NCBI GenBank assembly: GCA_044892525.1 | Contig: CM097887.1 | Span: forward strand, 120,878,397 to 120,942,396 | Reading direction: 5' to 3' | From: Schmidtea polychroa | Taxonomy: Eukaryota | DNA length: 64,000 nt | Part shown: positions 1-62,083 of the stretch, piece by piece | Numbering within the stretch: the stretch's first letter is position 1 | How the letters are laid out: every line of letters starts with the position of its first letter | Notes under the pieces: generated by a model | Databases searched by the model: none | Told to the model about the DNA's origin: nothing | The model's input: only the letters and a program-made list of their open reading frames with translations | Program-made: the position numbers and the translations under genes

Positions 1-2
1 CC

Positions 3-656
3 TGTGCAACGAGGAAAAACACTGGATCGAAATGGAAAGCACCTTTGACGCCAATGCCGGTACCAATAGAGCCGATGACAATGATATCAATGGACGTAGT
101 TGGTCCATTACCGGAATCGGATAGAGGAAACGTTTATATTTTAGTGATTACAGACTTTCTCACGAAATTTCCAGAAGCATTCGCGATGCCAGACCAAAAA
201 GCTAAAACAATCGCAAAAATTTTGGTAGAAGAGATATGTTGCCGATATGGAACACCAAAACAAATATTAACCGATCAGGGAACTAATTTTATGAGTGAGA
301 TAATGAGCGAAGTAACGAACTATTTCAAAATCGCAAAACTAAGAACATCTCCATATCACCCTCAAACCAATGGGATGACGGAAAGATTTAATGGAACACT
401 TATACAAATGCTATCAAACTACGTCGATCGTCACCAACGAGATTGGGACGAATATATAAACCTATGTCTTATGGCGTACAGAATGTCGATTCACGCATCA
501 ACGAAAATGAGCCCATTTAAATTAATGTACGGAAGAGAATGTAACATGCCAATGGACCTGGAATACCACCACCGATATCGCAGTATATGGAGATCAACGA
601 TTATGTTACGAAATTCAAGGAAAGAATGCAAGAAATTTGGGAAACTGCGGGATTAA
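3..656 (+). CDS. Ty3/gypsy integrase core (frame open from the window edge; frameshifted near 563-586)
   Basis: Motifs SMDVVGPLP, ILTDQGTNFMS and PQTNGMTERFNGTL give an intact D,D(35)E triad. The frame is open from nt 3 (CATRKNTGSKWKAPLTPM). Confidence 0.95.
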   Translation, partial: CATRKNTGSKWKAPLTPMPVPIEPMTMISMDVVGPLPESDRGNVYILVITDFLTKFPEAFAMPDQKAKTIAKILVEEICCRYGTPKQILTDQGTNFMSEIMSEVTNYFKIAKLRTSPYHPQTNGMTERFNGTLIQMLSNYVDRHQRDWDEYINLCLMAYRMSIHASTKMSPFKLMYGRECNMPMDLEYHHRYRSIWRSTIMLRNSRKECKKFGKLRD

Positions 657-3367
657 ATATCAAGTTCTACCAGGAAAGTTATAAAGACTTACACGATCGA
701 AAGAAAAACGTGAAGCAACATACGTTTCAAACAGGTGATTGGGTAATGATAGAAACCCCGGAATTAATTCCAGGAACCACAAAAAAGTTACAACGCAACG
801 GAAAAGGACCATATGAGATTCTATTTGTAGGCGAAACCAATGTAAGAGTGAAATTGGTAAATAATCCATTCACCAGGCCAATATACGTGAACGTGGCACG
901 ATGTAAATCAATTCCAAAAACCGCCACCAGTCAACCGGAAGGTCGAACATTAACCACACGTTCGCAAACATACAGAATGAACATGATGCAACAACTCGCA
1001 GAACCTATCACTGGACGATTGGGCATACAACCATCGGAAGCGGAAAAAATCGTACGAGAGGTAAAGATAAAATTACCCGGATGGGCAAAAGATCGATTAG
1101 ATTTCGAAATATTAGGAGGATTATTGACGATGATCGAAAATTATGCGAACAGAGAGAGGACACATCCGTTATTGCGAGTAGTTAAAAGTCAATGGCCAAT
1201 ATTATTTACAATAACAGATCATTATGGAGACACACCATTACACAAACTCATGAAAGTAGGTAACAACGAGCAAATACTAGAAACAATAGAAGCATTTCAC
1301 GACTGCAAGCGATCAACAGAACAAGAAAACAACCAAGGTTACACACCATTAATGATAGCAGCAAACAGAGGCAAAACCAAAGACATTATAACCGCATTAC
1401 TTGATACTGGATACGAGCGGAAAAATGCACTACATCATGCTATCGAAGGGAAAAGTACCGAGGCATTCACGTCTTTGATGGAACTACTATCATATGAAGA
1501 CAATCGAGAAGTCGGAAACATGTATGATGGATTGTTAACAGCGATCAAAGAAAAACTGACAACAATTACCGGAATATTAATTACATGGAGAAATCCAATT
1601 AAAAATGATTATATGATCAACGTAAACGAAGCGTTCACGAGAGGAGAGAACACGCTGATGAGAGAAGCTATGAAAGGACATCATTTATTCGAAATCCCGA
1701 ATCAATTACTAGAACGAGGGATAAAATTCACAAATCATAAAGATGAACAGTTAGCAAAAAAGCGAATCGACACATTCGAAAAATCACTATTCCAATTTTC
1801 TAACCAAGTACGAAATAAATATTGGGAAACGGTAAGTGTGTTATATATGATGGACACAATGAATAACATCCGCGAGAATTACCTGGATATTATCCAAATA
1901 CTTACAGCAGAGGAACGAATCAATAATCCAAACGGAAAGAAAACGAAAATAAGGTATGGGAAATCAAGGGAACCAAAGTCGACAACGAACCAAACGGTCA
2001 CAAACAACGTCATCGAAACCAAATCAATGAGTATAGATCAAGAGGCAATAATACGCAAAGCAAAAGAAGTATTCTTCGAGGAAATGCTAGAGCTGTCAGA
2101 CGAAATAATATTGTCAAAAATAATAAAAGCCGTACACACATACGCAAGAGACCAAACCACGGGTTTAGATATCGGGAAAATCAAAACCTTCTTGCCTCGA
2201 GCATTTACGATGGTAACAAAGGATTCCAGAACACCTCTACAACAAGCAATACTAGCTGCAAAAGAGAATAGAGCAATAACGATCATGAGAATCCTTGGGG
2301 AGATGGGCGAAGAAACCAACACGAAAAATGAACAAGGCGAAACCGCCATGATGTATGCAGCTATAACGAAAATACACCCAAAAACACTCCACATACTACA
2401 TCAATCGGGATCGAAACTAGACGAAAGGTCCAATGAAGGAAATTCCACCTTGGACTGGGCAACCATACAGCCAAACTTAGAAATGATCAGATTTATTTGC
2501 AAAAATGCGACAAAAGAAGAAGTTGAAAATATATGCAGAAACACATCTCAATTTCAGTGGAATACGGTACGGAAAAATCTAGAAGCAATGAAATTATTAT
2601 TAACATGGAGAGTACCACAAAATAATAAATACGCGATAAATGTAAACGAATTCTACGAAAACGGAGAAAACGCGATGGTAAAGAATACATTAACTAAAGG
2701 GGGGACACCAAAAATTATTTTAATAGTATTAAACAGAGAAGACCTCAAATTCACGCAAAATCAGAACGAGCAACAACGAGTTGGAAAACATCGTCGTATT
2801 CAATTGAGAGAGTTAGTCAAAGAATGGAATAGAAAGAGACATGCTGCAACGGGTAGAAAAGAGTTTGAATTCGAAGCAAAATTAGCAAGAAACAGAGTGC
2901 TAACAGCATATCGCAGATTATTGAACGATATAAATGTCGAGGACGACATTTTAAACGACAGCGGGGGAGATAAACACGATGACAATGACGGAAAAGGCCG
3001 AAAAGAGGATAAAGGGAAAAGAGAACCGGAAGAGGATAAACCGGAAAACAAGGATTTGGATACGAAAAGAGAGGGAAACAGCCCGGGAACCAAGACCAAA
3101 GAGGAGGAAAAACCGAATAATGGAAAACAGAGGGTATGCCTACCTTTCACTAACAAAGAAATAGAGACAAATATGATATTAATGATAATTATGCTTACCA
3201 TGATAGAGTTAGTAACAGCTCATGGAGGGACGAGAACGATAAAAGAAACCAAAGAAGCGGAGAATCAAGATAGCAAAGAGGATGAACTAAAACAAGAAAA
3301 GAAAAAGCAAGCACAAGAGCAGCAGTGGGATTTAAAGGAAGAATGGGACTTAAAGGAAAGGGACTAA
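587..3367 (+). CDS. Integrase C-terminal (GPY/F, SH3-like) region fused to an ankyrin-repeat protein with a hydrophobic tail
   Basis: FQTGDWVMI..KKLQRNGKGPYEI is a typical gypsy IN C-terminus. Ankyrin consensus matches: YGDTPLHKLM, QGYTPLMIAANRG, KNALHHAIEG, SRTPLQQAILAA, QGETAMMYAAI, EGNSTLDWATI. Confidence 0.85.
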   Translation: MEINDYVTKFKERMQEIWETAGLNIKFYQESYKDLHDRKKNVKQHTFQTGDWVMIETPELIPGTTKKLQRNGKGPYEILFVGETNVRVKLVNNPFTRPIYVNVARCKSIPKTATSQPEGRTLTTRSQTYRMNMMQQLAEPITGRLGIQPSEAEKIVREVKIKLPGWAKDRLDFEILGGLLTMIENYANRERTHPLLRVVKSQWPILFTITDHYGDTPLHKLMKVGNNEQILETIEAFHDCKRSTEQENNQGYTPLMIAANRGKTKDIITALLDTGYERKNALHHAIEGKSTEAFTSLMELLSYEDNREVGNMYDGLLTAIKEKLTTITGILITWRNPIKNDYMINVNEAFTRGENTLMREAMKGHHLFEIPNQLLERGIKFTNHKDEQLAKKRIDTFEKSLFQFSNQVRNKYWETVSVLYMMDTMNNIRENYLDIIQILTAEERINNPNGKKTKIRYGKSREPKSTTNQTVTNNVIETKSMSIDQEAIIRKAKEVFFEEMLELSDEIILSKIIKAVHTYARDQTTGLDIGKIKTFLPRAFTMVTKDSRTPLQQAILAAKENRAITIMRILGEMGEETNTKNEQGETAMMYAAITKIHPKTLHILHQSGSKLDERSNEGNSTLDWATIQPNLEMIRFICKNATKEEVENICRNTSQFQWNTVRKNLEAMKLLLTWRVPQNNKYAINVNEFYENGENAMVKNTLTKGGTPKIILIVLNREDLKFTQNQNEQQRVGKHRRIQLRELVKEWNRKRHAATGRKEFEFEAKLARNRVLTAYRRLLNDINVEDDILNDSGGDKHDDNDGKGRKEDKGKREPEEDKPENKDLDTKREGNSPGTKTKEEEKPNNGKQRVCLPFTNKEIETNMILMIIMLTMIELVTAHGGTRTIKETKEAENQDSKEDELKQEKKKQAQEQQWDLKEEWDLKERD

Positions 3368-3389
3368 AAGAAAGGGACTAGGAAGATGC

Positions 3390-4184
3390 ATGTCTAGAGC
3401 GTATCAGAAACTAGTACTGATAAATGAGGACACAGAACCAATAACAGAAGTAAGAATACAAGAAGCATACCGAAATCGAAACGGGAAGAGAATAACGAAC
3501 GTTAAAGGAAAAGAGGTACACCTAGGAAAAGGTGGTGAAGTAGTAATAACGCAGCTCCAACCTAGAAAAGAGCACAAAGTCTGTATTTCAAGATTAGGAC
3601 CCGGTGAGAGATGCCATCAATATGTGACGCAGCAGCAGCCGCCGAAAGAATACACGGTTTGTATCTGGAGAAACGAATCAAAAAGAGAATGCCGACGATA
3701 CCCGGGGAAAAGAGGAAAGAAAAGAAAAAACCACGACGAAAAGGACGAAGGAGGAAAGCACAAGAAAACCGGCGAGGAAGCTCAGGACAACTATGTTTCG
3801 GAGGAAGAGATGGAAAAAATACAAAAGATGGCAAAGGAGGGTATGAACGAGGAAATAGCAAGAATACGAGAGATGATGAAAGGGAATGGCAAAAGAGGGA
3901 ACGAGAAAAGTACAGAAGCAATATCAACATTAACAAACAAGGAAAAACCAGAGAGTATAAGCGTGAAGCAGATGATGTGGATCAGTGGGATAATAATAAC
4001 AGGGGCCTTCCTAATCATAACGGGGGGAACAATAAAAATAATTAAAGATAAACGACATCGCGGAGAACTAGAGATGACCCGAATCAGAAATTTCCAACAT
4101 CGAGTGAAACGACCAAGTGATATCAAACAAGAACAGTGGGTGGAGGCCTGGAACGCTCAGCGCCCTCCAAACTCACGTATATAG
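3390..4184 (+). CDS. Element A accessory ORF, unknown; duplicated Cys-pair motif and one predicted TM helix
   Basis: 264-aa ORF in the element's A-rich style. TQLQPRKEHKVCISR..RCHQY and TQQQPPKEYTVCIWR..ECRRY; hydrophobic MMWISGIIITGAFLIITGGTI. Confidence 0.7.
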   Translation: MSRAYQKLVLINEDTEPITEVRIQEAYRNRNGKRITNVKGKEVHLGKGGEVVITQLQPRKEHKVCISRLGPGERCHQYVTQQQPPKEYTVCIWRNESKRECRRYPGKRGKKRKNHDEKDEGGKHKKTGEEAQDNYVSEEEMEKIQKMAKEGMNEEIARIREMMKGNGKRGNEKSTEAISTLTNKEKPESISVKQMMWISGIIITGAFLIITGGTIKIIKDKRHRGELEMTRIRNFQHRVKRPSDIKQEQWVEAWNAQRPPNSRI

Positions 4185-4344
4185 AAAGGAATATAACTGT
4201 ATATAATTGTAAAAAGTAAGTATATCTTATGTATATAACAGTACTATATCTGTATATAAGCGTGGTATCAATATTATACAATAACGGGAATCATAAAATA
4301 AAATTAAATTTAAATAAGAGTTGAAAAGTGTATATAAATTAAGA

Positions 4345-4704
4345 ATGGATCAAGGAAATAACGAAATGAACCACAATACAGTAACTGAAGAATTATGGAA
4401 GCAACAATGTGCCGTATTAGCACAATTAGTGTCCAATTTGCAAGAACAAGGATTGACGATGCACAGAAACCTAATCGAGAGTATGAATAGAGGATTTAGT
4501 TATTTGAAGACAATTGAAGACCAGAGGTTGAAAATCGAACAAATGCAAAGAGAGATAGAGAGGATAACCCAATATAGCCGTAGACAGGAAATTGAACTAG
4601 AAAGAATGATGGAGGAAGCAGAACAGACAGAAATAGAAGACTGGTCGGAATGGCTAATGAATAGAGAGGAGAGCGGACACGAAGCCGACTCTTCCGAACC
4701 CTAA
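4345..4704 (+). CDS. Element A accessory ORF, small coiled-coil protein
   Basis: First ATG at 4345 follows an AT-rich spacer; helical E/Q/R-rich sequence. Confidence 0.6.
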   Translation: MDQGNNEMNHNTVTEELWKQQCAVLAQLVSNLQEQGLTMHRNLIESMNRGFSYLKTIEDQRLKIEQMQREIERITQYSRRQEIELERMMEEAEQTEIEDWSEWLMNREESGHEADSSEP

Positions 4705-4789
4705 ACCAAACCTAGCTTAAAATGTAAATAATTGTAAATAAAATATCGAACCTATATCGATAAGAACTATATGTACATATAATTATAGA

Positions 4790-6178
4790 ATGGATAAACG
4801 ACAAAGAGAAGAGTTCAGAGAGATTGTTGAACGAGTCCGAAAGTCTACAACGATCAGAATACACAAACATGTTATGTGCGGAATATGTGAAAAGTTGTTA
4901 AAAGAACCTCACCAAACTCAATGTGGATGCAGAGTATGTAAAGAATGTATCAGTGAAGCAATAAAGAATAGACCACAGTGGTGCCCGGTGTGTAAAGAGA
5001 CACTAATATCGAGTTTAGAAGACACTAACGAGGATAAAGCCGCAGTGAAAGACATGTTAAACACCAACCTGGGATGCAAAAATGCCCCATGCGAATGGAA
5101 AGGAGTAATATGGAAGGTAGTACAACATATGGGAGAATGTATGTACAGAATTGGCCAGTGTGAAAGGTGCCATAAAACCATTCGAGCAAGCGAAGAAAAA
5201 GAGCATCAAAGGCAGTGTGAAGAGAGATTGGAAAGATGTGAACATTGTGGAGAAATAGATACGTGGAAAAATCTCACCCTCAAACATCACAATGTCCAAG
5301 AGGAGAGGGAATGTGCAGAGTTCAGTGGGGAATGCCCAAACGGATGTAACCAAGGGGAAATAATAAAGGTGGCACAGCATCTAAGGGAATGTGAAAAGAA
5401 AAGAATGACATGTGTACTAGGTAAATGGGGTTGTCAGAAACTACTACACCGAGGGGAGTTACCACATCATTTAGTAGAAAATGCTTCAACCCACGCAGAA
5501 ATGTGGTCGACTGCGTTACAAGAAAGCGAAGAGAAAGTAAAACAAATGGAGATAGAGATAACATCGTTGAAAGTGCTAGTCAAAGAATTACTAGAAGAAA
5601 GGGAAGCGTTCGAAGAAGCCCGAGCAAACATAAAGATGCAAATAAACCGAATAGAAATCAGTAATAATCAGGCCAAGGAGCTACATCAGAAAATACGGGA
5701 AATAAATCTAAATGAGATAACCCCAACAGCACCCTACATATGGAAAATAACGGGAGTAAAAGAAAGAATACGAAAAGCAAAACCCGGAGAAGAGACAAGA
5801 ATAACAAGTCCTGCATTCCATTCTTGGAAAAATGGGTACAAAATGAAAATGAAGATATATCCCAACGGGGACGGAACCGGATTAGATACACACTTTTCGA
5901 TTTTCTTTCTGTTATGTAAAGGGGAATACGACGAAATAATAGAGTGGCCGTTCCAGGCAAAAATCGATATTGCACTAATGAATGACCGAAGCATCCACGA
6001 ACAAAGCTTCAAGACAACTGGAAACCAAATGTGTTACCAGAGACCTACGGAAGAAGAAGGATCAGCAACAGGAGCACCTACGTTCATCCTACAACAAAAA
6101 GTAGAAGATATGGCAAGAAATGACACGGTGTATATCAAGATGACCGTGAGGAAAGAGGAGAAGGGCAGAACGGAGTAA
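4790..6178 (+). CDS. TRAF: Full-length intronless TRAF (TRAF2/3/5-like): RING, TRAF zinc fingers, coiled coil, MATH
   Basis: RING CGICEKLLKEPHQTQCGCRVCKEC..CPVC; zf-TRAF repeats (CKNAPCEW..HMGEC, CPNGC..HLREC); MATH PYIWKITG..GYKMKMKIYPNGDGTGLDTHFSIFFLLCKGEYDEIIEWPF. Confidence 0.95.
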   Translation: MDKRQREEFREIVERVRKSTTIRIHKHVMCGICEKLLKEPHQTQCGCRVCKECISEAIKNRPQWCPVCKETLISSLEDTNEDKAAVKDMLNTNLGCKNAPCEWKGVIWKVVQHMGECMYRIGQCERCHKTIRASEEKEHQRQCEERLERCEHCGEIDTWKNLTLKHHNVQEERECAEFSGECPNGCNQGEIIKVAQHLRECEKKRMTCVLGKWGCQKLLHRGELPHHLVENASTHAEMWSTALQESEEKVKQMEIEITSLKVLVKELLEEREAFEEARANIKMQINRIEISNNQAKELHQKIREINLNEITPTAPYIWKITGVKERIRKAKPGEETRITSPAFHSWKNGYKMKMKIYPNGDGTGLDTHFSIFFLLCKGEYDEIIEWPFQAKIDIALMNDRSIHEQSFKTTGNQMCYQRPTEEEGSATGAPTFILQQKVEDMARNDTVYIKMTVRKEEKGRTE

Positions 6179-6371
6179 CTAATCGAATAATGTTGTATAT
6201 AATAATCTGTATATATCGGTGTATATAACCAATAAAATATTATATAATAATAGTATGAAAACCCTAAATACGAAAACCCAAAAATGATGCAAAAATTTCC
6301 AAAGAAACAGTAAATAATGAATAAATTCCTTTTTCATAATAAAAAGATTAATCGATGTCTATGATTTAGAG

Positions 6372-7427
6372 ATGACACAAGAGAAACTAACCGAAACTGC
6401 GATAGCCCCAACCAATGTCAACAAGACACAAATTCCCCGAGAACATAACAAAAAATGGAACAAAGTAATGTTCCAACTAACTAATCTCACCCGAAATCAC
6501 ATCGAAGAAGCTAGAGAGGATGAGAATAGTCAATACCAATGGTTAATACACAACTTAAGAGCGGAAGGAGAAGCATGCAAAAGAGCATCAAAATGGGCGT
6601 CACTAGAAAATACCCGCCAAGAAGCGCACAGCCACTACTTAAAGCAGCTAGTGCAGGAAGCGAGAAAGAGACTTACCGATGAGAACACCAAGCGCGAAGC
6701 GGAAAAGCAAATAGAAGGAAGGAAAATGATGCACTTAGTGGCAGAAGCGAGAAAATGGAAAAGACAAAACAGTGAAATGAAAAAAGAGATGAAAGAATTG
6801 CCCATGAGACTCGGATATGAAAGCGAACAAGGTAAATGGGAGGAGAATTTAATAATAAAGGAAGAATTGAAACGGTTGAGAAAGGTCGCCGCCCGAAGTC
6901 AAACCTGGCAAACAAAGGCTATGGAGTTTGAGCGACATTTCGCAATAAAATGCGACATAAGAGAGCACGAGAATGCCGCAATGGAAGAGATGATAACCCA
7001 ACAAGCAGGACGGGTTGTGGAATTAGTAAATCAGGTAGAAGAGATGAAAAGAGACCTTAATGGATTACAAGGATCGTTGGAACAAAGAAACATGGTCCTA
7101 GCTGGAAAAAACAGAAAATTAGAAAACGAAAGGAAAATGTACACCGAAAATATCAAAAACTTGGAAATAGAAATTGAAAAATGGAAGGGCGACGAGAAAA
7201 TCAAGGCCCTAGATAGACAAATAGAGATGAAAGACGAAGAGACAAGGTACCTCACCTACCTGCTCGACGAAGAGCTGAACATCACTCGAGCTCTAAGAGA
7301 CGAAATTAATGAGTTGAGAGCCCAAATTCCCCAATATTACCTACCATACGACCCTATTGCGATACAGTTACATCCCGCGGTCGATAGTGATGAAGGTTAT
7401 GTAGGCCAGGAGGAAACCTTCGTATAA
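6372..7427 (+). CDS. Element A accessory ORF, long coiled-coil protein of unknown family
   Basis: Uninterrupted 351-aa E/K/R-rich helical ORF flanked by AT-rich spacers; ends ETFV. Confidence 0.7.
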   Translation: MTQEKLTETAIAPTNVNKTQIPREHNKKWNKVMFQLTNLTRNHIEEAREDENSQYQWLIHNLRAEGEACKRASKWASLENTRQEAHSHYLKQLVQEARKRLTDENTKREAEKQIEGRKMMHLVAEARKWKRQNSEMKKEMKELPMRLGYESEQGKWEENLIIKEELKRLRKVAARSQTWQTKAMEFERHFAIKCDIREHENAAMEEMITQQAGRVVELVNQVEEMKRDLNGLQGSLEQRNMVLAGKNRKLENERKMYTENIKNLEIEIEKWKGDEKIKALDRQIEMKDEETRYLTYLLDEELNITRALRDEINELRAQIPQYYLPYDPIAIQLHPAVDSDEGYVGQEETFV

Positions 7428-7593
7428 GGGTGAATAAAAGATGAAAACAAAAATCGGGACGTATATCCCAAAAAAAAAAAATTAAAGTATTGTAAAAGTA
7501 TTTAAGGGACTGTAACCCGAACTATTAAATTTTATATAAATGTATATGTATAAGTCGCACTATAGCGCACCATTAACTGTACATATTACAGAT

Positions 7594-8298
7594 ATGAAAA
7601 TCGAGGAAATAATAGAAATTACGAGCGACGTAGAAGAGGGAGAGATTGAGGCAGAAACAACAGAAACACAAACGTTAAAGGCCGAGTTACGGGAAGAGAA
7701 GTACGAAAACGAGAGACTAGTAAACAAATATATAGAAGACCGAAAAATGATTAAAATACTTAAGAAAGAGTGCGAAGTGCTAGGAGAAATAAAGAGAGAA
7801 GCCGAAGAGAAGAATGAATGGCTGCAAGAACAACGAAAACGAGGAAGAAATTGGGAAAGGATTGCAGAGGAACTATGGCAAGAGAGGGCAAGCTTCAAGG
7901 CAGAAGAAGTAATCCAGGATTATTGGAAAACAGAGGCGAAAGAACGCCAAATAACTATAAATAAATTAAATCAACAATTGGAGGAAAAACAACGAGAAAG
8001 TGAGGAAATGAAGAAATGGATTCGCAAATACCAAGAGATCGAGAGAAAACAACAACAACAACAACGAAACCTTTCGCAGGAAAACGAACAAGATTTCCTA
8101 CAAATCGAACTAAAAAGGAATCTCGACAAAAAACGGGAAGAAATTAGAAGACTGAAAAAGGAGATAAGGCACATGAAAAGGGAGGTCCGTGAAAAGAACA
8201 GACAGTTGGAAATGCTGCCCGAGTTAAGACACAGAGTCATTAAAGCGGAATCCACCTTGATGAGAATCGCCGAAAATAACCCAAATCAGAACCATTAA
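7594..8298 (+). CDS. Element A accessory ORF, coiled-coil protein of unknown family
   Basis: Long charged helical ORF; likely start at ATG 7594 after TTACAG (the track starts at 7540). Confidence 0.7.
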   Translation: MKIEEIIEITSDVEEGEIEAETTETQTLKAELREEKYENERLVNKYIEDRKMIKILKKECEVLGEIKREAEEKNEWLQEQRKRGRNWERIAEELWQERASFKAEEVIQDYWKTEAKERQITINKLNQQLEEKQRESEEMKKWIRKYQEIERKQQQQQRNLSQENEQDFLQIELKRNLDKKREEIRRLKKEIRHMKREVREKNRQLEMLPELRHRVIKAESTLMRIAENNPNQNH

Positions 8299-8353
8299 AT
8301 TAAGGGTCACTAAAACCAATTGTAAATAAACATAATGAATGTATAATAGTATC

Positions 8354-8998
8354 ATGCGAGGCGAGATGATGATAACAATGACGGTATTGATGATTCTGAT
8401 GGAGAACAAACAAGTAAACGCCCAACCGAAAATCGTACGAGATTACCGCAATCAAAATCAAGAACCTAAACAAGAATCCGGCAAATGCACATACCCTATG
8501 ACAGTAAAAACCCATATCATCCAAACCATTCAATCAACCCGATCACACATCAACAACATCCAAACAATGTGTAAAAAGAATCCCATTTGTACAATGATAA
8601 ACAAACAAATTCTCGAACAAATCCAACAATTCGACCAGTTAGAACAACAAATGCAACAAGAGAATTTTGAAAATCTTGTAGAAAAGCCAAAAACACCTCC
8701 CGAAATCAATGACACCCATTATCTCATATATGTGGTGATTGCAGAAACCCTCCTCCTATGTCTACCAATACTCATGAAGATTTACGAAGTTAGAAATAGA
8801 TGTAGAATCTCGACATCAATAAGAGTAATCTCGAACAGAAATCCTCAAGAAGTGCCACTGACAAATCTTAACCCAACCCCATTCCGACCTCGAATCCCGA
8901 GTAACCAACCAATCCAGCCGAATTCTAACAGTCAGACCTATCTCAACATCAATACCCAAACCAACCAACAGCCGCCAACAGAAGCATCAAATGATTAA
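8354..8998 (+). CDS. Element A accessory ORF, predicted type I membrane protein
   Basis: Signal-like MMITMTVLMILMENKQVNAQ, two Cys in a Q-rich ectodomain, TM YLIYVVIAETLLLCLPILM, N/Q/P-rich tail. Confidence 0.65.
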   Translation: MRGEMMITMTVLMILMENKQVNAQPKIVRDYRNQNQEPKQESGKCTYPMTVKTHIIQTIQSTRSHINNIQTMCKKNPICTMINKQILEQIQQFDQLEQQMQQENFENLVEKPKTPPEINDTHYLIYVVIAETLLLCLPILMKIYEVRNRCRISTSIRVISNRNPQEVPLTNLNPTPFRPRIPSNQPIQPNSNSQTYLNINTQTNQQPPTEASND

Positions 8999-9575
8999 TA
9001 GTTCATAAATTCTAACTCAAACATTTGTGTTATCATATGTGGAAACTTTTATTGTATATACAAACTATCACCTTAAGTGATAATTGCTTGGTCTTGATTT
9101 GACCTATATCTTAGAATAAAAATTTTTTGTTTTTGTATAAATGTTTCGATATATCCTTTTTATGAATGCATGAAGTAAGATAACTATGCAATTGCGGGAC
9201 GCAATTTTGATGGGTCCCCGAGTGATTTGTTGGGCTGAGCCGAAAGATAGCTGGGAAATCAGGTTAAACTTAACTAAAGAAAAATAAAAAAAGAAAAATA
9301 AAATAAAAAAAATAAAATAAATAGATTGAGAAATAAAATAGAATAGAATATAAGAAAAGCAATAATTAGAAAATAAGAATTAAAACAAAAAACATAAAAA
9401 TAAGAACAATTAAATAGGACAATAGAATGACGAAAAATAACGTAAAAGGTAGTAGATAATAAGGAAATTAAGGGAAATAAATAAAAACATAATTTTAATA
9501 AAGAAAATAAGAAGAAATAACCCAAAAACAAGGAAAAAAAATTAAATGAATAAAATAAGGCGGTACTCAATTCTG

Positions 9576-41392: not shown

Positions 41393-41953
41393 AAAAAAGC
41401 TAATGGTCCCCTCCATCCGGATTTTACTTTCTTTTTTTTATTATCTTTTTAACTTTTCATTATTGTTTTTATTCTTTTGTAGTTATCGTTCTATATTACT
41501 TTGAACTGGTTTATGTTATTATCTTTTATCATAGTTATGTAAACATATTAATTCATTATCTCTCTATATATAAAAAAGCTAAGGATACCCACCATCCGAA
41601 TTTTACTTTTTTTATTATTTTTATTCTTTTGAATTTATCGTTCTATATTATTTTGAAATGGTTTATTTTATTATCTTTTATCATAGTTATGTAAACATAT
41701 TAATTCATTATCTCTTTATATATAAAAAAGCTAAAGATACCCACCATCCGAATTTTAATTTTTTTTATTATTTTTATTCTTTTGAATTTATCGTTCTATA
41801 TTACTTTGAAATGGTTTATGCTATTATCTTTTATCATAGTTATGTAAACATATTAATAAACTGAATCTTAGTCCTGTCCACGAATATCATTATCATTAAC
41901 CCCGTGTTCTAACAGGGTTGGTGAAGCGAAGCGAACAGGGGCAGAGCCCCTGG
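41393..41953 (+). mobile_element. Non-autonomous Helitron-like repeat with about 150-bp internal tandem units
   Basis: Three units starting ATAAAAAAGCTAA; 3' hairpin AGGGG-CAGAG-CCCCT (41937-41951) ending CTGG|T (CTRR). An inverted copy lies at 47362-47617. Confidence 0.55.
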
Positions 41954-47959: not shown

Positions 47960-48997
47960 CCATTTAACAGTTTTGCACGAGCGTGACTCGGGCATTGATT
48001 TGGTTGACATAGTGACATACCCGAGCCTCGTTCGGGCAAATTCTGTTTTGACTTGTAGAGAGTGATTTTCAAGAACCGTGCTATTTCATGGGTGCTAGTG
48101 AATTAAAACACGAATGTTCTAGCTGCGCTTTGAGTCGTGGGAGTGGGTGAAATGATTTCGCGTGCGCTGTTTGGCTGTTTACAGACACGAATTTAGTCGT
48201 TCACATTTCGCAAGTTTATAACGTGGTGTCTAACGCTTATATGTATATTATAACTATTTGATCCACTGTTATACAATTTTTGTTCACATTTCAGACGTAA
48301 GTAAAATATGTAGTATATATACTTATTATTATACTCATTTTTATTTTATCTTTGATTTAGCCCATAATGTCTGAAGCAGATTATGAAACTGATGAAGAAC
48401 TGTTGATAAGCGAATCATACTATGACAGTGAATCAGAATCATCTGATTCTTATGATTCTGTTTCAGAAAACGAAGATGTCGGTTCATTCAGAGAAATTTT
48501 TGAAATAAATATTGAAAATTCATCTCTGCCTCCGCCAAGGTTTCTGTATAACGATACAGCTGGTGTAAACTTGCAATTTGATGATGATAGTGAGGAGACA
48601 AATTTACGCTACTTCGAATATTTTTGGAATACAGAAATCCTGGACTTGATTACAACTGAGACTAACCGGTATGCAGGCCAATGCAGCAGTGGGATTTTGC
48701 GAAGATTTTCGCGTTTGAAGAAATGGACATAGACAGATAATGGAGAAATTATGGTTTCTATGCTCTTCAAATTCTACAAGGTATTATAAATAAGCCGAAA
48801 ACCGAATGGTACTGGTCTAAGAAGGATATGATTGAAACACCATTCTTCGCAAAAGTTATGTCCTACAAGCGTTTTGTCTTATTGAAGCGTTGTATTCATT
48901 TTACAGATAATTCAACATATAATCCTGGAGCGCACCCAAGCACCAAATTAAATAAGTTATGGTCTATCATTGAACATCTAAATAAAAAAATTTCTTC
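47960..48997 (+). mobile_element. 5' part of a piggyBac (PGBD4-like) element; transposase relic 48367-48997, truncated by an LTR
   Basis: TTAA|CCATTTAACAG start; acidic N-terminus, YFEYFWNTEILDLITTETNRYA, YWSKKDMIETPFFAKVMSYKRF..CIHFTDN..KLWSIIEHLN. Confidence 0.82.
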
Positions 48998-53575: not shown

Positions 53576-55564
53576 CAAAAATATTGGCAACTTTATTTAT
53601 ACATTATGGTTAATTAATTAAAAACAATAAAAATTATCGATTCAAAAATGTATGTAAAATTAAACTTTACTTTTGAGTATAGGTGCCGTAAAAAAGAACC
53701 AATTTATCACGATAAAAATGTCACTGCTTCGAAATATTCTTGGTTTTTAATGCTAAATTTTCAATTGATCGAGTCATGTTAATAACTTATTTGTTTTTTG
53801 TTTGAATAACTAATTATGAAGTTATTATTCGAGAAACATCAATTCCAGGAAAAACAACATCAATTCGGAAGCCCAATTATTTAAATAAAAATCAACAGTT
53901 ACATAATTTATCATATATTATAAATAATCAAATCTTACTTTAAACGGAATTTTATTTGTAGTTTATCAACTTTAAACTTGAAATGCAATTAATTTCTATT
54001 CACGAGATATATGGTCATTATTAATAATAATGCAAATTGGTTTAGATATTCAAATTACATAACTAAAGAATAATAATTCTCAAAAAATAACACCAGTTCA
54101 AGTTTTTTTTCCAAAATTAGTCAAAATAAAATTAGAACTTAATATAACTTTCAATTAATATATAAAACACAAAATAGAAATTTCTTACATAATGCTTAAA
54201 TTTTAGTACACTTGTATAAAAACTAATTAAAAAGTAGATATGAAAATAACAAAATTAACGAATTTTAGTTCAGATAACTTAATATAACAATATAAATATT
54301 GATCAAGGCTTTAAAAAAATTGTATTAAATCAAGTAATTGAAATTACCTTAAACAACAAATCATTGAAATCATTATATAAACAAGTACTGTTTTTTAAGA
54401 AAGGAGTGTTATTTACTTAAACAATTTACATATTTCGACAATTTTTAATTTTTAGTGTAAACGAAGATGTGAAATTTTTTATTTAGTAACAAATTCAAGA
54501 TTATAGCTGTTTATATAACAAAAATTTTATAATGTAAATCATTAATTAATTTTATAATAAATAAGATTCAACACATACAGTCATATAGTTTGAGTTCCTT
54601 AAGCCTTTCAATCCTTTAGGAACATATTGTCCCAGAAAATTTCAGATATATACCTTAATGTAATAGATGATTGCAATTGTGTTGGGATGTGTAATTTCAG
54701 CACTGTGTAATCATAGGTACCTAGACAATTCTATTCATGCAATTCTATTTTGAAAAATTCGTATTGAAAAGGTCAAGTAAGGTTACAAATATATATATAT
54801 TAGATAAAGAAGATATGATACTTGTACAATTTTTACTATTTTTTTTTATATATTTTTGTTTTACATTGCTTAAACATATTCTAGCAAATTCTATATTCAT
54901 TAGAATATCAATAAGTTGAAATCAGTCATATTTGTGATTCTGAACCATTTTTTTGCATTATGGTACACTTTTATCAATTTAAAAATTTGGCAGCACTTTG
55001 ACAATCGAAATAATATTAAAGAATTTTCCTTGATCAATGGATTGATGTACCTCTTGTTGAGCTAGAAGAAAATTTCTTTTATCATTTGTTTAACTCTTCT
55101 TTTTGAGAATGTTTTTTTTGTTTTATTTAGTAAAAATTATTGAAAATGAAAAGCCGGCTAAGAGTAGAAACATAACAAATAAAAAGCATGAATTTAATTA
55201 AAATAATAATAAAAGCACCAAATAAAACAAAATAAAAATGTAACAAGAGGAAAATTTAATAAAAATAAATATAATAAAATAAGAAGGTCACAAGATGTTG
55301 CACATGAAACATAATTAGAGCAGTAAACCAAAGTAATCGCTAAAAAGAGACATAAAGCACAAAAAACGCTTTTAAATAAAGATGGTGTACGAAAGCGATT
55401 GACCAAACAATCGGGATCGAGTAATTAAAATATAATAAAAATTAAAATTAATTAAATAAATGTAAAAATAACTTAAACCAATTAAAATGATTCAATTAAA
55501 AAATGAAATACCTAAGTTAAATACAATAAAAATTACATACAGGTTGATCTTGGTTGGTTGGTTC

Positions 55565-56611
55565 TGTTGGATGACAGAGGAAGAAGAATCGAAGAGTTTG
55601 AACTAACACATTACTATAGAACGGGCAGCAACAAGTTCAGAATCAATATATACGTAGAGCCCAGATAACTCAAGCCGGACAAATCAAAACAATTATCATT
55701 ACAATTTGATTACTGACTTATGTACATTAGTTATTTATCGGACTATTATTTTATGACAATTATTATTACGGTGTTTTATATTATTTTATCAATGTATCTT
55801 ATTTATTTTATGGATTTTATGTTTGATATTTCATGTAAATAAAACATAGTATGGGGATTAATTAAATAATTAATATCAGTATAGCTACAAAATACATAAT
55901 ATTGAAAATAATAAAAATATAAGTGGACACTTTAAATAATTGAAAAACATATGTTTTAAAATCATAGGAGCATGAGTGGTTCTCGAGTCGTGGGAACATA
56001 ATAATAATTAATAGCAATAATAATAATTTTAGTAATAATAATAATTTTAATTTTTTTATCACAAATTTTTAGCAATCATAAATAATTTTAATATTTTAAT
56101 TTTTAGCAATCATAAATAATTTTAATATTTTATCACATAACAATAATCAATTTTGTAGCAATTATTTAATAAGCATGTATATAAAAATATATTAATTTCT
56201 TAATTATATTTCACTTCTTAAGTACACTTGAAAAATATAACAATTTAATTTCATATACAAAAAAAGTATAAATAGCGAGTCAAAATTCATTTTTTTCGCC
56301 CCAAAATTTTAACCGCGTTAACATACTAAAAAGGTTAATCCTTATTAGTGCTAAAACTCGAACAGACAAACAGAAACGTTCAAAAGCCTACACGCAACAC
56401 AGCAAGAGAATACATAACATTCACACAGTACATACAAGCATATTCGGTTGGATATTTGAAGGATTTTTGGATTTTTGTAACCTAGCAACAAATTCATATT
56501 GGTAAATTTTTCTTTATAATAAAAGTTTTATAAATCACTTTGTCTTTTGATATATTTGTACATATATAAGAACCAGTAAGTTGAGTGTTCCCGAATATCG
56601 AGACCTCAACA
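55565..56611 (+). repeat. 5' LTR of element B
   Basis: No differences from 60693-61739 seen by eye; identical 66-aa shadow ORFs offset by 5,128 nt. Confidence 0.97.
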
Positions 56612-56613
56612 TT

Positions 56614-56631
56614 TGGTGCCGCGAACCGGGA
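56614..56631 (+). promoter_or_regulatory. Primer binding site TGGTGCCGCGAACCGGGA
   Basis: Starts with TGG 2 nt after the LTR; resembles the complement of tRNA-Phe 3' ends (TGGTGCCGAAACCCGGGA), less so tRNA-His. Confidence 0.85.
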
Positions 56632-56850
56632 CTTTAAAATCAATTATTGTTATTCACAATTTGGGGGATAGGAATTGAGATCAGAGGGTATAGTATTTTA
56701 TATTGGGAAAATATATTTATAAAAATAATATCATTGATCAATTTTTAAATAAATAAATTCAGTTTTGAAAATTATTAAATAATTCAAAAAGATAAAATAG
56801 ATAATCAACCCTAAATAGTTTATAATCTCAGAAATAGAATAGTCTATAGG

Positions 56851-59247
56851 ATGAATAATAATAATAATAATTGCATAAAAATTTTACCAGTAGAACCATA
56901 TAGAGGAGAGCCTGAAAAGTGCGACGATTTTTTCACTGAGATCGCTCAGTATACAGAAGCTTGTGGTTGGACACCTGATGAATTAAAAATGAGAATCCCA
57001 TTATACTTAAAAGGTTATGCGTTACAGGCATACAATAACTTAGAATGTAAAGGGAATAATTTTGATCAACTCGTAAGATATCTGAGAGCAGAAATAGTAA
57101 TCGATAGCGATTTACAAAAGATAAATGTTCAAAAATTTAGAAACAGATATCAAGGAACTAGAGAATCAGTTGGTGAATATGTATATACAATTACGGAATT
57201 AGCGAAAAAGGCATTTGGTGCAGGCGAGCACACACCAAAGTTAATTGAGGATCAGTTTTGGAACGGTATACAAAAATATTTATATAAAGCATTAATTATG
57301 GTAGAATATGGTAATTTAAATGAATTAGTTCATAAAGCTAAACGTATAGAAGCAATACAACGAGATAGATTTAGCTCACATGTAGATGCAATGGAAATCC
57401 AAAAACCCATCGAGGTAAAATCTGAGTTGGGTAAGTCAGATGACAACATTCCATGGGAGGAGATGAAGCAACTATATTTAAACTTTGTAAAAAATAGACG
57501 AAGGGTAAGCCCGAGTCCGGATAGAAGTCAATCGCCTGAAAACAGGAGGAGATTTGATAATGTGAGAAACAGAAACTTTGAGAATAGAAACAATAGAAAC
57601 ACTTTTGATAGAGATAATCGATACGAATACAATAGAAATAATTATACGAGAGATAATCGAGTCGATTTTAATAGAAATAATTTGAGAAATAATAAATATG
57701 ATAGAAGTAATAGATATGATAATAGAGATAATACAAATGATTTGAGACGTAGACAGACAAGTCCATATAGACAGAATTCATATAGAGAAAGGCGAGGAAG
57801 CCCTTATAATAATGATGGTAGAGATAAAGTAAATTTTAATGGACAAATCAAATGTTATAATTGCCAAAAATATGGTCACTTAGCTAAATTATGTAACAAT
57901 GCGCGAAGCGAATCGCCTAATAGAGTGAGATTTAAAAATGAACCTGAGATAAAACAAATTAATAGTGCTGAGTTGATATCAGCTAATGAGGAAATAAACA
58001 GTTTGAGAGAGGAATTAAAAGAATTTAAAACTCAATATGGGAGACTTATTGAGAGAAAGTTAGAAATGTCATTAAATGAGTTTCAGTGTTTTACTAATAA
58101 TGTAGATATAGATAATGATGAGTTTCGCGAAGCAAGAGAAGCGGATGAGAAATTTCTTGCAGAAGCAAATAGATGTAAAGAATTAAAAGAGGAATTGAAA
58201 GAGACATTAGAGAAATGGCCTTATGATGACAATGAGACATTGCGTATAATAAATAGAGTTCAAGTCGAAGGAATTGACTTAGAATATTTGAGAAATTTGA
58301 TACCACTAATGGTAAAGAGGCAAAATATGACAAGAGTATTTGAACTAGAAATAGAATTGAAAGAAATGATAAAGTGTTATGGTGAATTTGTGAGAAAAAA
58401 TCAGAAATTACATGAGTCATTGAATATAACTATTGAGGCAAAGGACCTTTCGAGAATACTTATGCGTAGTACAGGGGTACATGTTTGCACAAAAGTGAAT
58501 AAAGTGAAACAGATGGCCAGAGCAAATTGGCCCGAGAAATTGGGAGATAATGATAAAGTGAAACTGTATTTTAACGGCGTAGAAATGATGAATAATGAAT
58601 ATATAATTGACTATGGAGTAAACGTCATTGATAACAATATTATTTCTGCAGTAATAGAAAGGCAAGAAAGTAAAGAAATTGATACACCAACTCCATCAGT
58701 AGAATTGAGTATAAATGACGAAAATGACTATGATAAATTATTTAGATTGTGGGATGCTTCTTCAGGAGGAGCAATGAGGTCACCAACAGTTAGCGATGAA
58801 ATCTTTAAACCTATTGATACTAAATATGATAATTTACATGAGACAATAGAAAAAATTGCGAAACAAGCAAATATGCAGGACGCAGAGACGATGAGACGAG
58901 GTAGAGGAAGGCCTCGAAAATCGGAAATAGTCGAAAAGTCAGATGACAGAAAGGCAGCAGAGCGTCTAAGAGATATTGCAAATAATATGAGACAGGAAGT
59001 CCCAAAAATTCAGGATAATGACAAAGATATAAAGATGATAACAGAGTTAGTTAAAGCAATGAATATGAGACGATTTCCGGAAGCAAAACCATCAGCGTTA
59101 ATAGAAAATATAGTTAAAAAGATTAAATTAATGGAAAAAGAGATTAGAGAATTGAGTGCAGAGGAAGCAAATGAAGAGACAGTGTTAAAGATATTATTTA
59201 CAACAGGAGTTAATCGAGATAAAGTGATTACGCAATGGCATATTTAA
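56851..59247 (+). CDS. Gag (capsid plus CCHC) extended by helical, ubiquitin-like and AT-hook regions
   Basis: PYRGEPEKCDDFF..GWT..IPLYLKGYA capsid; CYNCQKYGHLAKLC at 57853-57894; KLYFNGVEMMNNEYIIDYGV Ubl signature; RRGRGRPRK. Confidence 0.9.
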   Translation: MNNNNNNCIKILPVEPYRGEPEKCDDFFTEIAQYTEACGWTPDELKMRIPLYLKGYALQAYNNLECKGNNFDQLVRYLRAEIVIDSDLQKINVQKFRNRYQGTRESVGEYVYTITELAKKAFGAGEHTPKLIEDQFWNGIQKYLYKALIMVEYGNLNELVHKAKRIEAIQRDRFSSHVDAMEIQKPIEVKSELGKSDDNIPWEEMKQLYLNFVKNRRRVSPSPDRSQSPENRRRFDNVRNRNFENRNNRNTFDRDNRYEYNRNNYTRDNRVDFNRNNLRNNKYDRSNRYDNRDNTNDLRRRQTSPYRQNSYRERRGSPYNNDGRDKVNFNGQIKCYNCQKYGHLAKLCNNARSESPNRVRFKNEPEIKQINSAELISANEEINSLREELKEFKTQYGRLIERKLEMSLNEFQCFTNNVDIDNDEFREAREADEKFLAEANRCKELKEELKETLEKWPYDDNETLRIINRVQVEGIDLEYLRNLIPLMVKRQNMTRVFELEIELKEMIKCYGEFVRKNQKLHESLNITIEAKDLSRILMRSTGVHVCTKVNKVKQMARANWPEKLGDNDKVKLYFNGVEMMNNEYIIDYGVNVIDNNIISAVIERQESKEIDTPTPSVELSINDENDYDKLFRLWDASSGGAMRSPTVSDEIFKPIDTKYDNLHETIEKIAKQANMQDAETMRRGRGRPRKSEIVEKSDDRKAAERLRDIANNMRQEVPKIQDNDKDIKMITELVKAMNMRRFPEAKPSALIENIVKKIKLMEKEIRELSAEEANEETVLKILFTTGVNRDKVITQWHI

Positions 59248-59630
59248 TAGCAAGATACAAGAAACTTTTGCGATTGAATCCAAAGAATCAAATAGAAAAT
59301 ATCGCTAAAATGATATATAATAAATTAAAGATAGATGCTATGCCATGGATAAAATTAAAGGGAGGATGGAAAATACTGTATGATGAGAGTCTAATCGAAA
59401 GTGCTCAGGAAAGCGTAGAAGATAATATTAATGTAGAAATAGATGATACGGAGGAAACAGTAAAAAATCTAGTAAATAAAACAACTATGAAACCAAGTCA
59501 AAAAGAAAGAAAGTCGACAATGTCAATAGTAATTATAGTAATAACATTGTTATTAGATCTGATAAAAGGGCAATCATGTTCGTCGATGTCAAAGAAGTAT
59601 GCGACATCAATAACAATCTCAGACCAGTAG
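59235..59630 (+). CDS. Element B ORF2 (possibly the frameshifted tail of ORF1), ending in a hydrophobic signal-like segment
   Basis: 13-nt overlap with ORF1; MSIVIIVITLLLDLIKGQ. Confidence 0.5.
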   Translation: MAYLIARYKKLLRLNPKNQIENIAKMIYNKLKIDAMPWIKLKGGWKILYDESLIESAQESVEDNINVEIDDTEETVKNLVNKTTMKPSQKERKSTMSIVIIVITLLLDLIKGQSCSSMSKKYATSITISDQ

Positions 59631-60796
59631 AGATATGCATCAGAAATTTTAGAGGAGAAATCGTATACAATAAAAAGGTGACTCCACGCACCAAAATCCA
59701 ACATTATTACCCGGAGAAGACAAGAGCAGACAGAGATTCGATAAGAGGAAACGAAGACGAATACCAAGCGCTGATCGACATACAGAAGCTGCTACTCGGA
59801 AAAATCATTGTGGGATACGAAATAATAAAGAAACTCAAGACGCTGACATTAGATCTGTACAATGTCATGGGAGTCAGAGAGTTAGCTGATGATGTGTTCA
59901 TGTGTTCATTCGTCAAAAATGTAGCACCACACAGAATCAAATTATCGAATCTCGCATACAAAGTAATCGCAACACACCCAAAATGGAAGAAAGACAAAGC
60001 AATCAACAACATCCTCAAAAAACCCGAACCGTTCTCAGCAGAAGATACAACACTAATCGCAAAAGTCATCTACCTTTTGGTCGAGAAGCAGTGGGAAGAA
60101 GTCATAAGGTGGGACATGACAGCATTCCAAAAGGATAATGGCCATCAACTCAGTCCAATAGAAGAAAACAGCGATGAGCCAGAGGAATTTGAGGAAGATA
60201 TATATATCGAACCCTCACAAAGAGAATTGAAATTCAATAAAGATGGGAGCAGATGTACCTTTGAAGATGAACTAATAGACAGCGATGATGACATCATATT
60301 CGTCAAAGAGGACAAAAAACCACAAGCAATCACAATAAAGGAAGAACCTCAGACATCAAGTAGTTACAACTATGCCGACCCACAATGTGATTTAGACTCG
60401 GATGAAGAATATTTCTCACCGAGCGAAGCAATGCAGATAGATGACGAACTAGGACCAGAGCCAAATGTCGAGTTGGAGGAGCCAATGTTCATCATCAAAG
60501 AGGGAAGATCCACTATCTCGGAAAAAGAAATACATCAACACTTCGGTAGACGAATTATTGATGGTGATGTGTTAAAATTGGCATTAAAGAAAGGATTCCA
60601 AAGAGCAACAATGTATATAAACGGTTGCGAAATCGAATTGGTCCTTAGCGATAAAGGTAATGAGGACATTACTTTATCGGCCCTAGGAGGAGTGTTGGAT
60701 GACAGAGGAAGAAGAATCGAAGAGTTTGAACTAACACATTACTATAGAACGGGCAGCAACAAGTTCAGAATCAATATATACGTAGAGCCCAGATAA
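59576..60796 (+). CDS. Element B ORF3: REX4/ISG20-like DEDDh exonuclease fold (catalytically degenerate) with acidic tail; ends inside the 3' LTR
   Basis: MFVDVKEV, VEICIRNFRGEIVYNKKVTP, IQKLLLGKIIVGYEIIKKLKTL, VRELAD, KLSNLAYKVI and PFSAEDTTLIAKVIYLLVEKQWE are colinear with the REX4 motifs. Confidence 0.8.
   Translation: MFVDVKEVCDINNNLRPVEICIRNFRGEIVYNKKVTPRTKIQHYYPEKTRADRDSIRGNEDEYQALIDIQKLLLGKIIVGYEIIKKLKTLTLDLYNVMGVRELADDVFMCSFVKNVAPHRIKLSNLAYKVIATHPKWKKDKAINNILKKPEPFSAEDTTLIAKVIYLLVEKQWEEVIRWDMTAFQKDNGHQLSPIEENSDEPEEFEEDIYIEPSQRELKFNKDGSRCTFEDELIDSDDDIIFVKEDKKPQAITIKEEPQTSSSYNYADPQCDLDSDEEYFSPSEAMQIDDELGPEPNVELEEPMFIIKEGRSTISEKEIHQHFGRRIIDGDVLKLALKKGFQRATMYINGCEIELVLSDKGNEDITLSALGGVLDDRGRRIEEFELTHYYRTGSNKFRINIYVEPR
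60685..60692 (+). promoter_or_regulatory. Polypurine tract AGGAGGAG
   Basis: Directly abuts the TG of the 3' LTR; short, and lies inside ORF3 (LGGV). Confidence 0.7.
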
Positions 60797-61739
60797 CTCA
60801 AGCCGGACAAATCAAAACAATTATCATTACAATTTGATTACTGACTTATGTACATTAGTTATTTATCGGACTATTATTTTATGACAATTATTATTACGGT
60901 GTTTTATATTATTTTATCAATGTATCTTATTTATTTTATGGATTTTATGTTTGATATTTCATGTAAATAAAACATAGTATGGGGATTAATTAAATAATTA
61001 ATATCAGTATAGCTACAAAATACATAATATTGAAAATAATAAAAATATAAGTGGACACTTTAAATAATTGAAAAACATATGTTTTAAAATCATAGGAGCA
61101 TGAGTGGTTCTCGAGTCGTGGGAACATAATAATAATTAATAGCAATAATAATAATTTTAGTAATAATAATAATTTTAATTTTTTTATCACAAATTTTTAG
61201 CAATCATAAATAATTTTAATATTTTAATTTTTAGCAATCATAAATAATTTTAATATTTTATCACATAACAATAATCAATTTTGTAGCAATTATTTAATAA
61301 GCATGTATATAAAAATATATTAATTTCTTAATTATATTTCACTTCTTAAGTACACTTGAAAAATATAACAATTTAATTTCATATACAAAAAAAGTATAAA
61401 TAGCGAGTCAAAATTCATTTTTTTCGCCCCAAAATTTTAACCGCGTTAACATACTAAAAAGGTTAATCCTTATTAGTGCTAAAACTCGAACAGACAAACA
61501 GAAACGTTCAAAAGCCTACACGCAACACAGCAAGAGAATACATAACATTCACACAGTACATACAAGCATATTCGGTTGGATATTTGAAGGATTTTTGGAT
61601 TTTTGTAACCTAGCAACAAATTCATATTGGTAAATTTTTCTTTATAATAAAAGTTTTATAAATCACTTTGTCTTTTGATATATTTGTACATATATAAGAA
61701 CCAGTAAGTTGAGTGTTCCCGAATATCGAGACCTCAACA
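60693..61739 (+). repeat. 3' LTR of element B
   Basis: See the 5' LTR; followed by the GTTC TSD. Confidence 0.97.
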
Positions 61740-62083
61740 GTTCAAAACCCAAAAAACTATATAAGTAGCTACCTCAGCAGACATTTTCATCTTTCAATTC
61801 AATTTTTCATAGGTGTTCAATAGCGGAATCCTTAATTTCAATTTTCAATAGAGATTTTAACAGAGAAATCTAGTAAAATGATTACAGCAATTTTATTCAG
61901 TTAGGAAAATTCTTGGAATACTAATTAATTTTAATTTTTTTCTATATGTTGTAAAGTACTAAATGTCTTAAACATATTCCAATGTATAGTAATGTATACT
62001 AACTTAATCATTCATTAAAAATTTTTTTGATCATTTGCTTTTACTCTTTCCATTTATATCTATGGTAAATTATGAGCTCAATG

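Follow-up and report, generated by a model that had tools for sequence, protein, structure and literature searches.

A 64,000-nucleotide stretch of DNA from Schmidtea polychroa (assembly GCA_044892525.1, contig CM097887.1, positions 120,878,397 to 120,942,396 of the forward strand), here called the window and numbered from its first letter, carries a retrotransposon with long terminal repeats (LTRs) that lacks pol. This focal element is an ordinary dependent mobile element, not a new kind. It very probably belongs to the Burro-type lineage, and the reading that we favor, at a probability of roughly 60%, is that of an internally deleted, non-autonomous Burro-type element that was inserted in its short form. 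What has been kept comprises the cis signals (the LTR promoter and polyadenylation region, primer-binding site [PBS], polypurine tract [PPT], and TG..CA ends), the 5′ modules (capsid, nucleocapsid knuckle, helical stretch, ubiquitin-like domain, BCL2-like tail, and env leader), and the 3′-terminal accessory gene, which is the third open reading frame (ORF3). One large internal deletion would have taken nearly all of env, the protease (PR), reverse transcriptase (RT), RNase H (RH), and integrase (IN), the accessory genes located after the integrase, and the N-terminal region of the ORF3-type protein.

Boundaries, cis signals, and coding capacity

The focal element occupies positions 55565-61739 (6175 bp in all, ~6.2 kb), with an internal region of 4081 bp and a longest ORF of 798 amino acids (aa). 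Sequence comparison identified its LTR pair as a direct repeat of 1047 bp whose two copies do not differ at any position. The boundaries are sharp, in that the bases immediately outside the two copies differ, and the LTR termini read TGTTG...CAACA. GTTC is present on both sides as a target-site duplication (TSD); we estimate from local base composition that a 4-bp match of this kind would arise by chance with a probability of ~0.8%. The identical LTRs and the intact TSD, PBS, and PPT that a preliminary description of this DNA had noted were thus all recovered. Because no difference has accumulated across 1047 bp of LTR, we infer that the insertion is very recent. The source sequence is AT rich (~30% GC), and the window contains three runs of N, none of them inside or adjoining the element. 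The features that delimit the element and its cis signals are as follows.

55561..55564 (no strand): target-site duplication GTTC, left copy, flank read directly
55565..56611 (+): 5′ LTR, 1047 bp, from repeat comparison and direct reading
56267-56274 (+): putative TATA signal TATAAATA in the 5′ LTR, an inferred promoter
56518-56523 (+): putative polyadenylation signal AATAAA in the 5′ LTR
56614..56632 (+): PBS TGGTGCCGCGAACCGGGAC, 19 nucleotides (nt), 2 bases after the 5′ LTR, complementary to a transfer RNA (tRNA) 3′ end, tRNA-Phe-like
60685..60692 (+): PPT AGGAGGAG, a purine run of only 8 nt abutting the 3′ LTR, read directly
60693..61739 (+): 3′ LTR, identical to the 5′ LTR, from repeat comparison and direct reading
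61740..61743 (no strand): target-site duplication GTTC, right copy, flank read directly

Some 0.8 kb beyond the 3′ LTR, at 62541-~62825, is an exon-like ORF assigned by Pfam to the Proteasome subunit family (E value of 4.7e-16), and the insertion therefore sits beside or within a host gene.

The PBS has a counterpart in L001, one of two metagenomic relatives (L001 and L002) described below. There, 16 of 19 positions are identical, and the site follows an LTR-like ...AACA end ~650 nt upstream of the L001 gag; the chance expectation for a 16/19 match in the L001 locus is 0.003. A scan of metagenome contigs with the PBS core pattern returned 120 loci, mostly GC-rich chance matches. Four tRNA genes in these contigs end in the core pattern, three of them tRNA-Phe(GAA) and one tRNA-Thr, and their 3′ ends show 2 to 3 mismatches to the 19-mer. 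Compared in this way with metagenome tRNAs, the PBS is of the tRNA-3′-end type and its cognate is probably Phe. Exact matches to the 19-mer in the metagenomes were rejected as chance occurrences, all of them lying in GC-rich bacterial contigs, and one further locus, L054, was unrelated. Searches for tRNA genes found none in the related loci, and neither tRNA genes nor Rfam families were found in the window.

The interior is tiled without gaps by three plus-strand ORFs in three different frames, such that the reading frame switches twice across successive ORFs. With the composition of the element, a stop codon is expected every 11 codons, and the probabilities of obtaining such ORF lengths by chance are 4e-33 (798 aa), 5e-6 (131 aa), and 3e-17 (406 aa). 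Neither ORF1 nor ORF3 contains an internal stop. Programmed -1 frameshifting between the ORFs was considered but is unsupported, the canonical slippery heptamer being absent from both overlaps. The ORFs and their domains are listed below.

56851..59247 (+): ORF1, 798 aa, extended Gag, from HMMER relatives and profile and structure matches
about 56878-57420 (+): ORF1 capsid, Ty3/Arc-type, from profile
57847-57894 (+): ORF1 single CCHC knuckle, from Pfam
about 58420-58659 (+): ORF1 ubiquitin-fold domain, from structure model and Foldseek
59235..59630 (+): ORF2, 131 aa, stub of a second-ORF polyprotein, from alignment to L001 and L002
59576..60796 (+): ORF3, 406 aa, with its stop codon 104 nt inside the 3′ LTR
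about 59624-60115 (+): ORF3 ISG20-like, exonuclease-like domain, from profile against ISG20L2/ISG20

In a Pfam scan of these ORFs, zf-CCHC was the sole family found; there was no PR, RT, RH, or IN. Likewise, tblastn searches with the polyproteins of relatives, an ankyrin ORF, and an integrase detected no remnant of PR, RT, RH, IN, or ankyrin repeats in the element. Both the long open ORFs and the absence of the four enzyme domains, already remarked on in the preliminary description, therefore hold under ORF statistics, Pfam, and tblastn. The pol domain order that serves to define the Gypsy superfamily is missing from the focal element, and because the element has no pol, its assignment as Gypsy-like is based on the contigs of its Gag relatives, in which the order is RT-RH-IN. 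Having no pol, a real Gag, and an otherwise complete structure, the element must depend on enzymes supplied in trans.

Gag, the env stub, and the Burro-type lineage

ORF1 encodes, in order, a capsid, an Arg/Asn-rich linker, a CCHC knuckle, a helical stretch, a ubiquitin-fold domain, and a basic/acidic tail. A word-based homolog search with the entire ORF1 returned nothing, whereas a full HMMER scan identified 138 relatives, nearly all of which match aa 2-170. We built a Gag profile from an alignment of the ORF1 N terminus and 13 relatives; the Pfam family Retrotrans_gag was recognized in 9 of these 14 sequences. The profile matches the dArc1 and dArc2 capsids (E values of 4.5e-8 to 1e-6), as well as PNMA2 and PEG10, and it also matches retroviral nucleocapsid knuckles. 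ORF1 residues ~10-190 and the corresponding parts of the relatives thus resemble Arc/Ty3-type capsids at the profile level, in agreement with the earlier claim of a retained Gag. The four matched capsid proteins are domesticated host genes; in contrast, the focal Gag belongs to an LTR-bounded unit that has a PBS and a PPT.

The region beyond the knuckle is shared with relatives as well. ORF1 aa 17-630 are collinear with the L001 Gag, P0006 (949 aa; E value of 2e-29), and the "extension" therefore belongs to the Gag of the lineage. Residues 443-589 match the N terminus of the L002 polyprotein. A structure model of aa 481-640 (predicted local distance difference test [pLDDT] score of 70.9, with 75-89 in the core) consists of a helix followed by a beta-grasp, and Foldseek matched it to ubiquitin, NEDD8, and SUMO1 with a probability of 1.0 and a target template modeling (TM) score of up to 0.88. 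A profile of the extension had no match among PDB sequences, and the ubiquitin fold is known solely from the model. One distant Gag relative, P0018 (1130 aa), unites a Monjiviricetes-type fusion glycoprotein with a CCHC knuckle in a single protein, and gag-env fusion therefore recurs in the wider group.

The two metagenomic relatives show what may surround such a Gag. In L002, the Gag (P0007) is followed by an ORF of 3036 aa that encodes a Monjiviricetes-type fusion glycoprotein (E value of 2e-86), protease, RT, RNase H, and integrase and then by an ankyrin ORF. In L001, the Gag is followed by a 1582-aa ORF, with a weak BCL2-like match, the same glycoprotein (E value of 2e-90), and protease-like domains, and likewise by an ankyrin ORF. 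Positions 7961-14612 of L001 contain env and two protease-like domains with the ankyrin ORF directly after them and no Pfam match to RT, RH, or IN; L001 may be a second, independent pol-reduced derivative of the lineage. Three short TGTTGGCG...CGCAACA units at L001 positions 3959-4130, in the presumed LTR, resemble joined LTR termini.

The short ORF2 is best understood by alignment to these loci. Its 131 residues include a C-terminal motif of the BCL2-like type, a hydrophobic segment, and the stretch that directly precedes the env domain of the relatives. Its Pfam Bcl-2 match is weak (E value of 0.017) and covers the last third of the profile; the N terminus of the second ORF of L001 gives the same weak match (E value of 0.013), ending at the same conserved motif. 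In alignment with L001, ORF2 sets in at the end of the BCL2-like module, crosses the hydrophobic segment, and stops just before env; a profile of ORF2 and L001 reaches the beginning of the env domain of L002 (E value of 0.06). The remainder of env and all of pol are absent after ORF2. As judged by these alignments, ORF2 is a stub left from a longer gene, and since it ends where the env domain of the relative begins, the element looks like a deletion derivative rather than the purpose-built satellite that had been proposed. We also asked whether the ORF1 C terminus contains the N-terminal half of the BCL2-like module, which ORF2 lacks, but found no significant similarity (E value of 2).

Burro and GYPSM1 elements are reportedly treated by Jurka in 2007 and by Grohme et al. 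in 2018, and Burro is said to have been defined in the latter work. They are giant Gypsy-like LTR elements of planarians, >30 kb in length, with the order Gag with CCHC knuckles, MATH_TRAF, SUMO-like, BCL2-like, env, and PR-RT-RH-IN (PMC6431247). Their env lies in frame between gag and pol and matches mononegavirus glycoproteins, and ankyrin repeats, BIR, and tandem repeats occur as well (PMC6431247). The focal element resembles them in its Gag with CCHC, its ubiquitin/SUMO-like domain, and its BCL2-like module, all in the same order, and in its AT-rich host. Within that order, the Gag and the ubiquitin fold are firm, the BCL2-like module is weak but recurs in L001, and env is represented by its first residues. 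The Gag relatives share with Burro an in-frame mononegavirus-type env before PR-RT-RH-IN; ankyrin accessory genes are found both in them and in element A, a partial giant element at the left edge of the window that also has MATH/TRAF. The supposedly novel effector domains of the preliminary description are accordingly family typical and not novel: they follow the published Burro order (PMC6431247), ORF2 is the stub described above, and the ORF3 domain recurs in a relative.

There are also clear differences. At 6.2 kb, the focal element is far from the >30 kb of Burro elements and has no giant polyprotein; it has a stub in place of env, a single CCHC knuckle, and no PR, RT, RH, IN, ankyrin, TRAF, or BIR. 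The Burro motifs that PMC6431247 lists include no counterpart of the ISG20-like domain of ORF3. Non-autonomous LTR elements that retain gag (TR-GAG elements and, in the wider sense, large retrotransposon derivatives [LARDs]) are a known class (PMC6431247). The focal element resembles them in its complete LTRs, PBS, PPT, and gag ORF, in its lack of pol, and in its presumed reliance on an autonomous relative. The TR-GAG and LARD classes were defined in plants, whereas the parent lineage here is an env-bearing animal element, with extra coding modules kept. In the literature covered, which did not extend to the 2018 work of Grohme et al., we found neither a short Burro derivative nor an ISG20-like Burro module described.

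ORF3 and its probable ISG20-like domain

ORF3 consists of the ISG20-like domain, an acidic linker, and a beta-rich C-terminal part. Its one close relative, P0001, is 59% identical over aa 2-337. P0001 (UniParc UPI00061083E2) is a gene model in which an ORF3-type protein, with a duplicated segment, is fused to the N terminus of acetyl-CoA carboxylase; the chimera is probably a read-through or a mis-annotation beside an insertion. A 26%-identical ORF3 domain is found in a 775-aa ORF directly upstream of the L001 LTR and PBS; if L001 is a tandem array or a permuted assembly, this ORF would lie close to the 3′ end in a giant element. Both P0001 and the 775-aa ORF have an N-terminal region that ORF3 lacks, and ORF3 starts with ATG exactly at the onset of the P0001 homology. 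At the other end, the last 35 residues of ORF3, which are encoded by the LTR, are 57% identical in a diverged LTR at position 19434 of the window. An exact-product look-up of ORF3 gave no record, alignment scans of metagenome and viral contigs with ORF3 gave no confirmed relative, and a second word search, started from P0001, retrieved only P0001 itself.

On its own, ORF3 matches ISG20 and ISG20L2 weakly (E values of 0.25 and 0.5). Profiles of the domain improve the matches to ISG20L2 and ISG20 to E values of 7e-6 and 3e-4, and a second profile gives 8e-4 and 5e-3; the next profile match after these is another DEDDh exonuclease domain. ISG20 and ISG20L2, REXO4-type DEDDh 3′-5′ exonucleases, are the sole non-trivial PDB matches of the ORF3 profile, and ORF3 is collinear with them over ~70 residues and in a second stretch close to the C-terminal helix. 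At the conserved motif of ISG20 that contains His-x-x-x-x-Asp, the three members of the ORF3 family have Tyr in place of His and Lys, Lys, and Thr in place of Asp. The Asp of this aligned second motif is a residue that we take to be catalytic in DEDDh exonucleases. Catalysis by ORF3 is doubtful because the motif is substituted in all three members; the first catalytic motif of ISG20-type exonucleases lies outside the aligned stretch. From these profile alignments, it is quite probable that ORF3 carries an ISG20-like domain of a catalytically degenerate kind.

Origin of the short form

For the favored reading, in which a deleted Burro-type element moved as such, we propose the following sequence of events. 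RNA would be transcribed from the 5′ LTR, packaged by Gag (either its own or that of a helper), and primed for reverse transcription by a host tRNA; the enzymes of an autonomous relative would then reverse transcribe and integrate it, yielding the 4-bp duplication. The element would most likely have been inserted in its present short form, very recently.

Several points weigh against this reading or its components. The identity of the Gag to its relatives is low, at 23-40%. The BCL2-like match of ORF2 is below the Pfam threshold (E value of 0.017). For ORF3, the Pfam scan gives no exonuclease family, and a structure model was unusable (pLDDT of 41, with TM scores of about 0.1 in the fold search) and was discarded. 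The apparent kinship to Burro is drawn from the described module order and not from the LTR, PBS, or TSD of named Burro families. Finally, a second copy, or a parent with matching LTRs, is absent from the window, which holds one copy.

This last point bears directly on the alternative of a deletion in situ, in which a full-length giant element was inserted recently and then lost its interior, leaving a short form that is unique and has never moved. This account explains the identical LTRs and the intact TSD equally well, and the env stub of ORF2 and the N-terminal loss of ORF3 are what an arbitrary deletion would give; no other copy with the same structure appeared in the window, in the exact-product look-up, or in the homology scans. 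The evidence on the other side is weak: the ORF3 ATG falls exactly at the onset of P0001 homology, and three open ORFs that tile the interior are tidier than a random deletion need be. We regard a deletion in situ as possible but unlikely.

An origin as a dedicated satellite was proposed in the preliminary description. It would make the focal element a selected lineage that assembles a capsid from its own Gag, uses the Pol of giant elements (element A, for example), and supplies anti-defence functions through ORF2 and ORF3. Element A, a giant Burro-type element, is truncated to its 3′ half by the left edge of the window, and its 5′ LTR, PBS, and gag fall outside. Its features, and those of a further LTR that is relevant here, are as follows.

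1..9227 (+): element A, 3′ half of a giant Burro-type element
45-656 (+): element A integrase, 56% identical to that of L002
587-3367 (+): element A ankyrin ORF, 926 aa
4790-6178 (+): element A RING+MATH TRAF-like ORF
9228 (+): candidate start of the element A 3′ LTR (TGTTGGG)
19434..~20400 (+): related diverged LTR, probably solo, with an uncertain 3′ end

Four further ORFs of element A have no family matches. L002, which holds the kin of its integrase, has a Gag homologous to ORF1, and on this sequence evidence element A belongs to the wider lineage. Its presence in the same window indicates that giant relatives live in this genome. The part of the proposal that treats element A as a relative thus stands at the level of the broad lineage. 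Its part as the specific source of Pol finds no such support: the focal LTR is not similar to element A at the DNA level and agrees with its candidate 3′ LTR start in the first 6 bases only (TGTTGG), and no end of that candidate LTR was found. A partnership appears plausible at the family level only.

The LTR at 19434 has the same first 14 bases as the focal LTR; the TATA region and the coding sequence for the ORF3 C terminus are conserved, and conservation between the two LTRs is confined to the first ~115 nt and the TATA region. It was rejected as the 3′ LTR of element A, since it has no ORF3-like body upstream and other transposon remnants intervene, and it is more likely a solo LTR.

Conservation of the ORF3 C terminus and of the LTR terminus in this second, diverged LTR would suit a dedicated satellite, as would the intact Gag and ORF3 and the fact that ORF3 resembles the antiviral ISG20 yet is without an acidic residue at the conserved Asp, as a decoy might be. 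The insertion is, however, too young for intact ORFs to indicate selection in the short form. Moreover, its modules are those of the parent lineage (PMC6431247), ORF2 is only a fragment, and no LTR or PBS common to element A is demonstrable. An anti-defence role would be an argument from resemblance, and we consider a dedicated satellite improbable. Still more specific is the idea of a propagating Burro-type satellite kept for its Gag and ORF3, in which ORF3 is a host-captured, dead ISG20/REXO4-type exonuclease that blunts RNA-degrading antiviral defence; we hold this to be highly improbable.

An assembly artefact, in which collapsed reads from giant repeats joined 5′ and 3′ parts and made the LTRs identical by consensus, might be suggested by the three N runs of the window and by the difficulty of assembling giant repeats (PMC11410931), but it is scarcely credible given that no N lies in or beside the element, that the flanks are unique, with a matching 4-bp duplication and the proteasome-subunit exon, and that the junction region is open reading frame throughout.

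Other repeats are present in the window. Tandem arrays lie at 13472-15470 (a 477-bp satellite, 4.2 copies, 93% matches), 22739-23255 (53-bp unit), and 41455-41911 (152-bp unit); the 477-bp satellite is a few kilobases downstream of the element A ORFs, and Burro reportedly has tandem repeats. Remnants of DNA transposons of the piggyBac and hAT types are found at 18482-19027, 48367-48732, 24943-26821, and 43980-45836 (minus strand).

Few known retroelements are as large as those of the Burro type, which occupy a substantial part of planarian genomes. The present derivative touches on the spread of such 30-kb elements and on the role of their modules related to apoptosis and ubiquitin; it leaves the general picture of how LTR elements function unchanged. 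If the ISG20-like domain of ORF3 is real, it would be a further host-derived module for the lineage. As a young 6-kb derivative with Gag, a ubiquitin-like module, and one 3′ accessory gene, the focal element offers a compact sample of the parts that travel together, and it indicates that the lineage has been active here in recent times.

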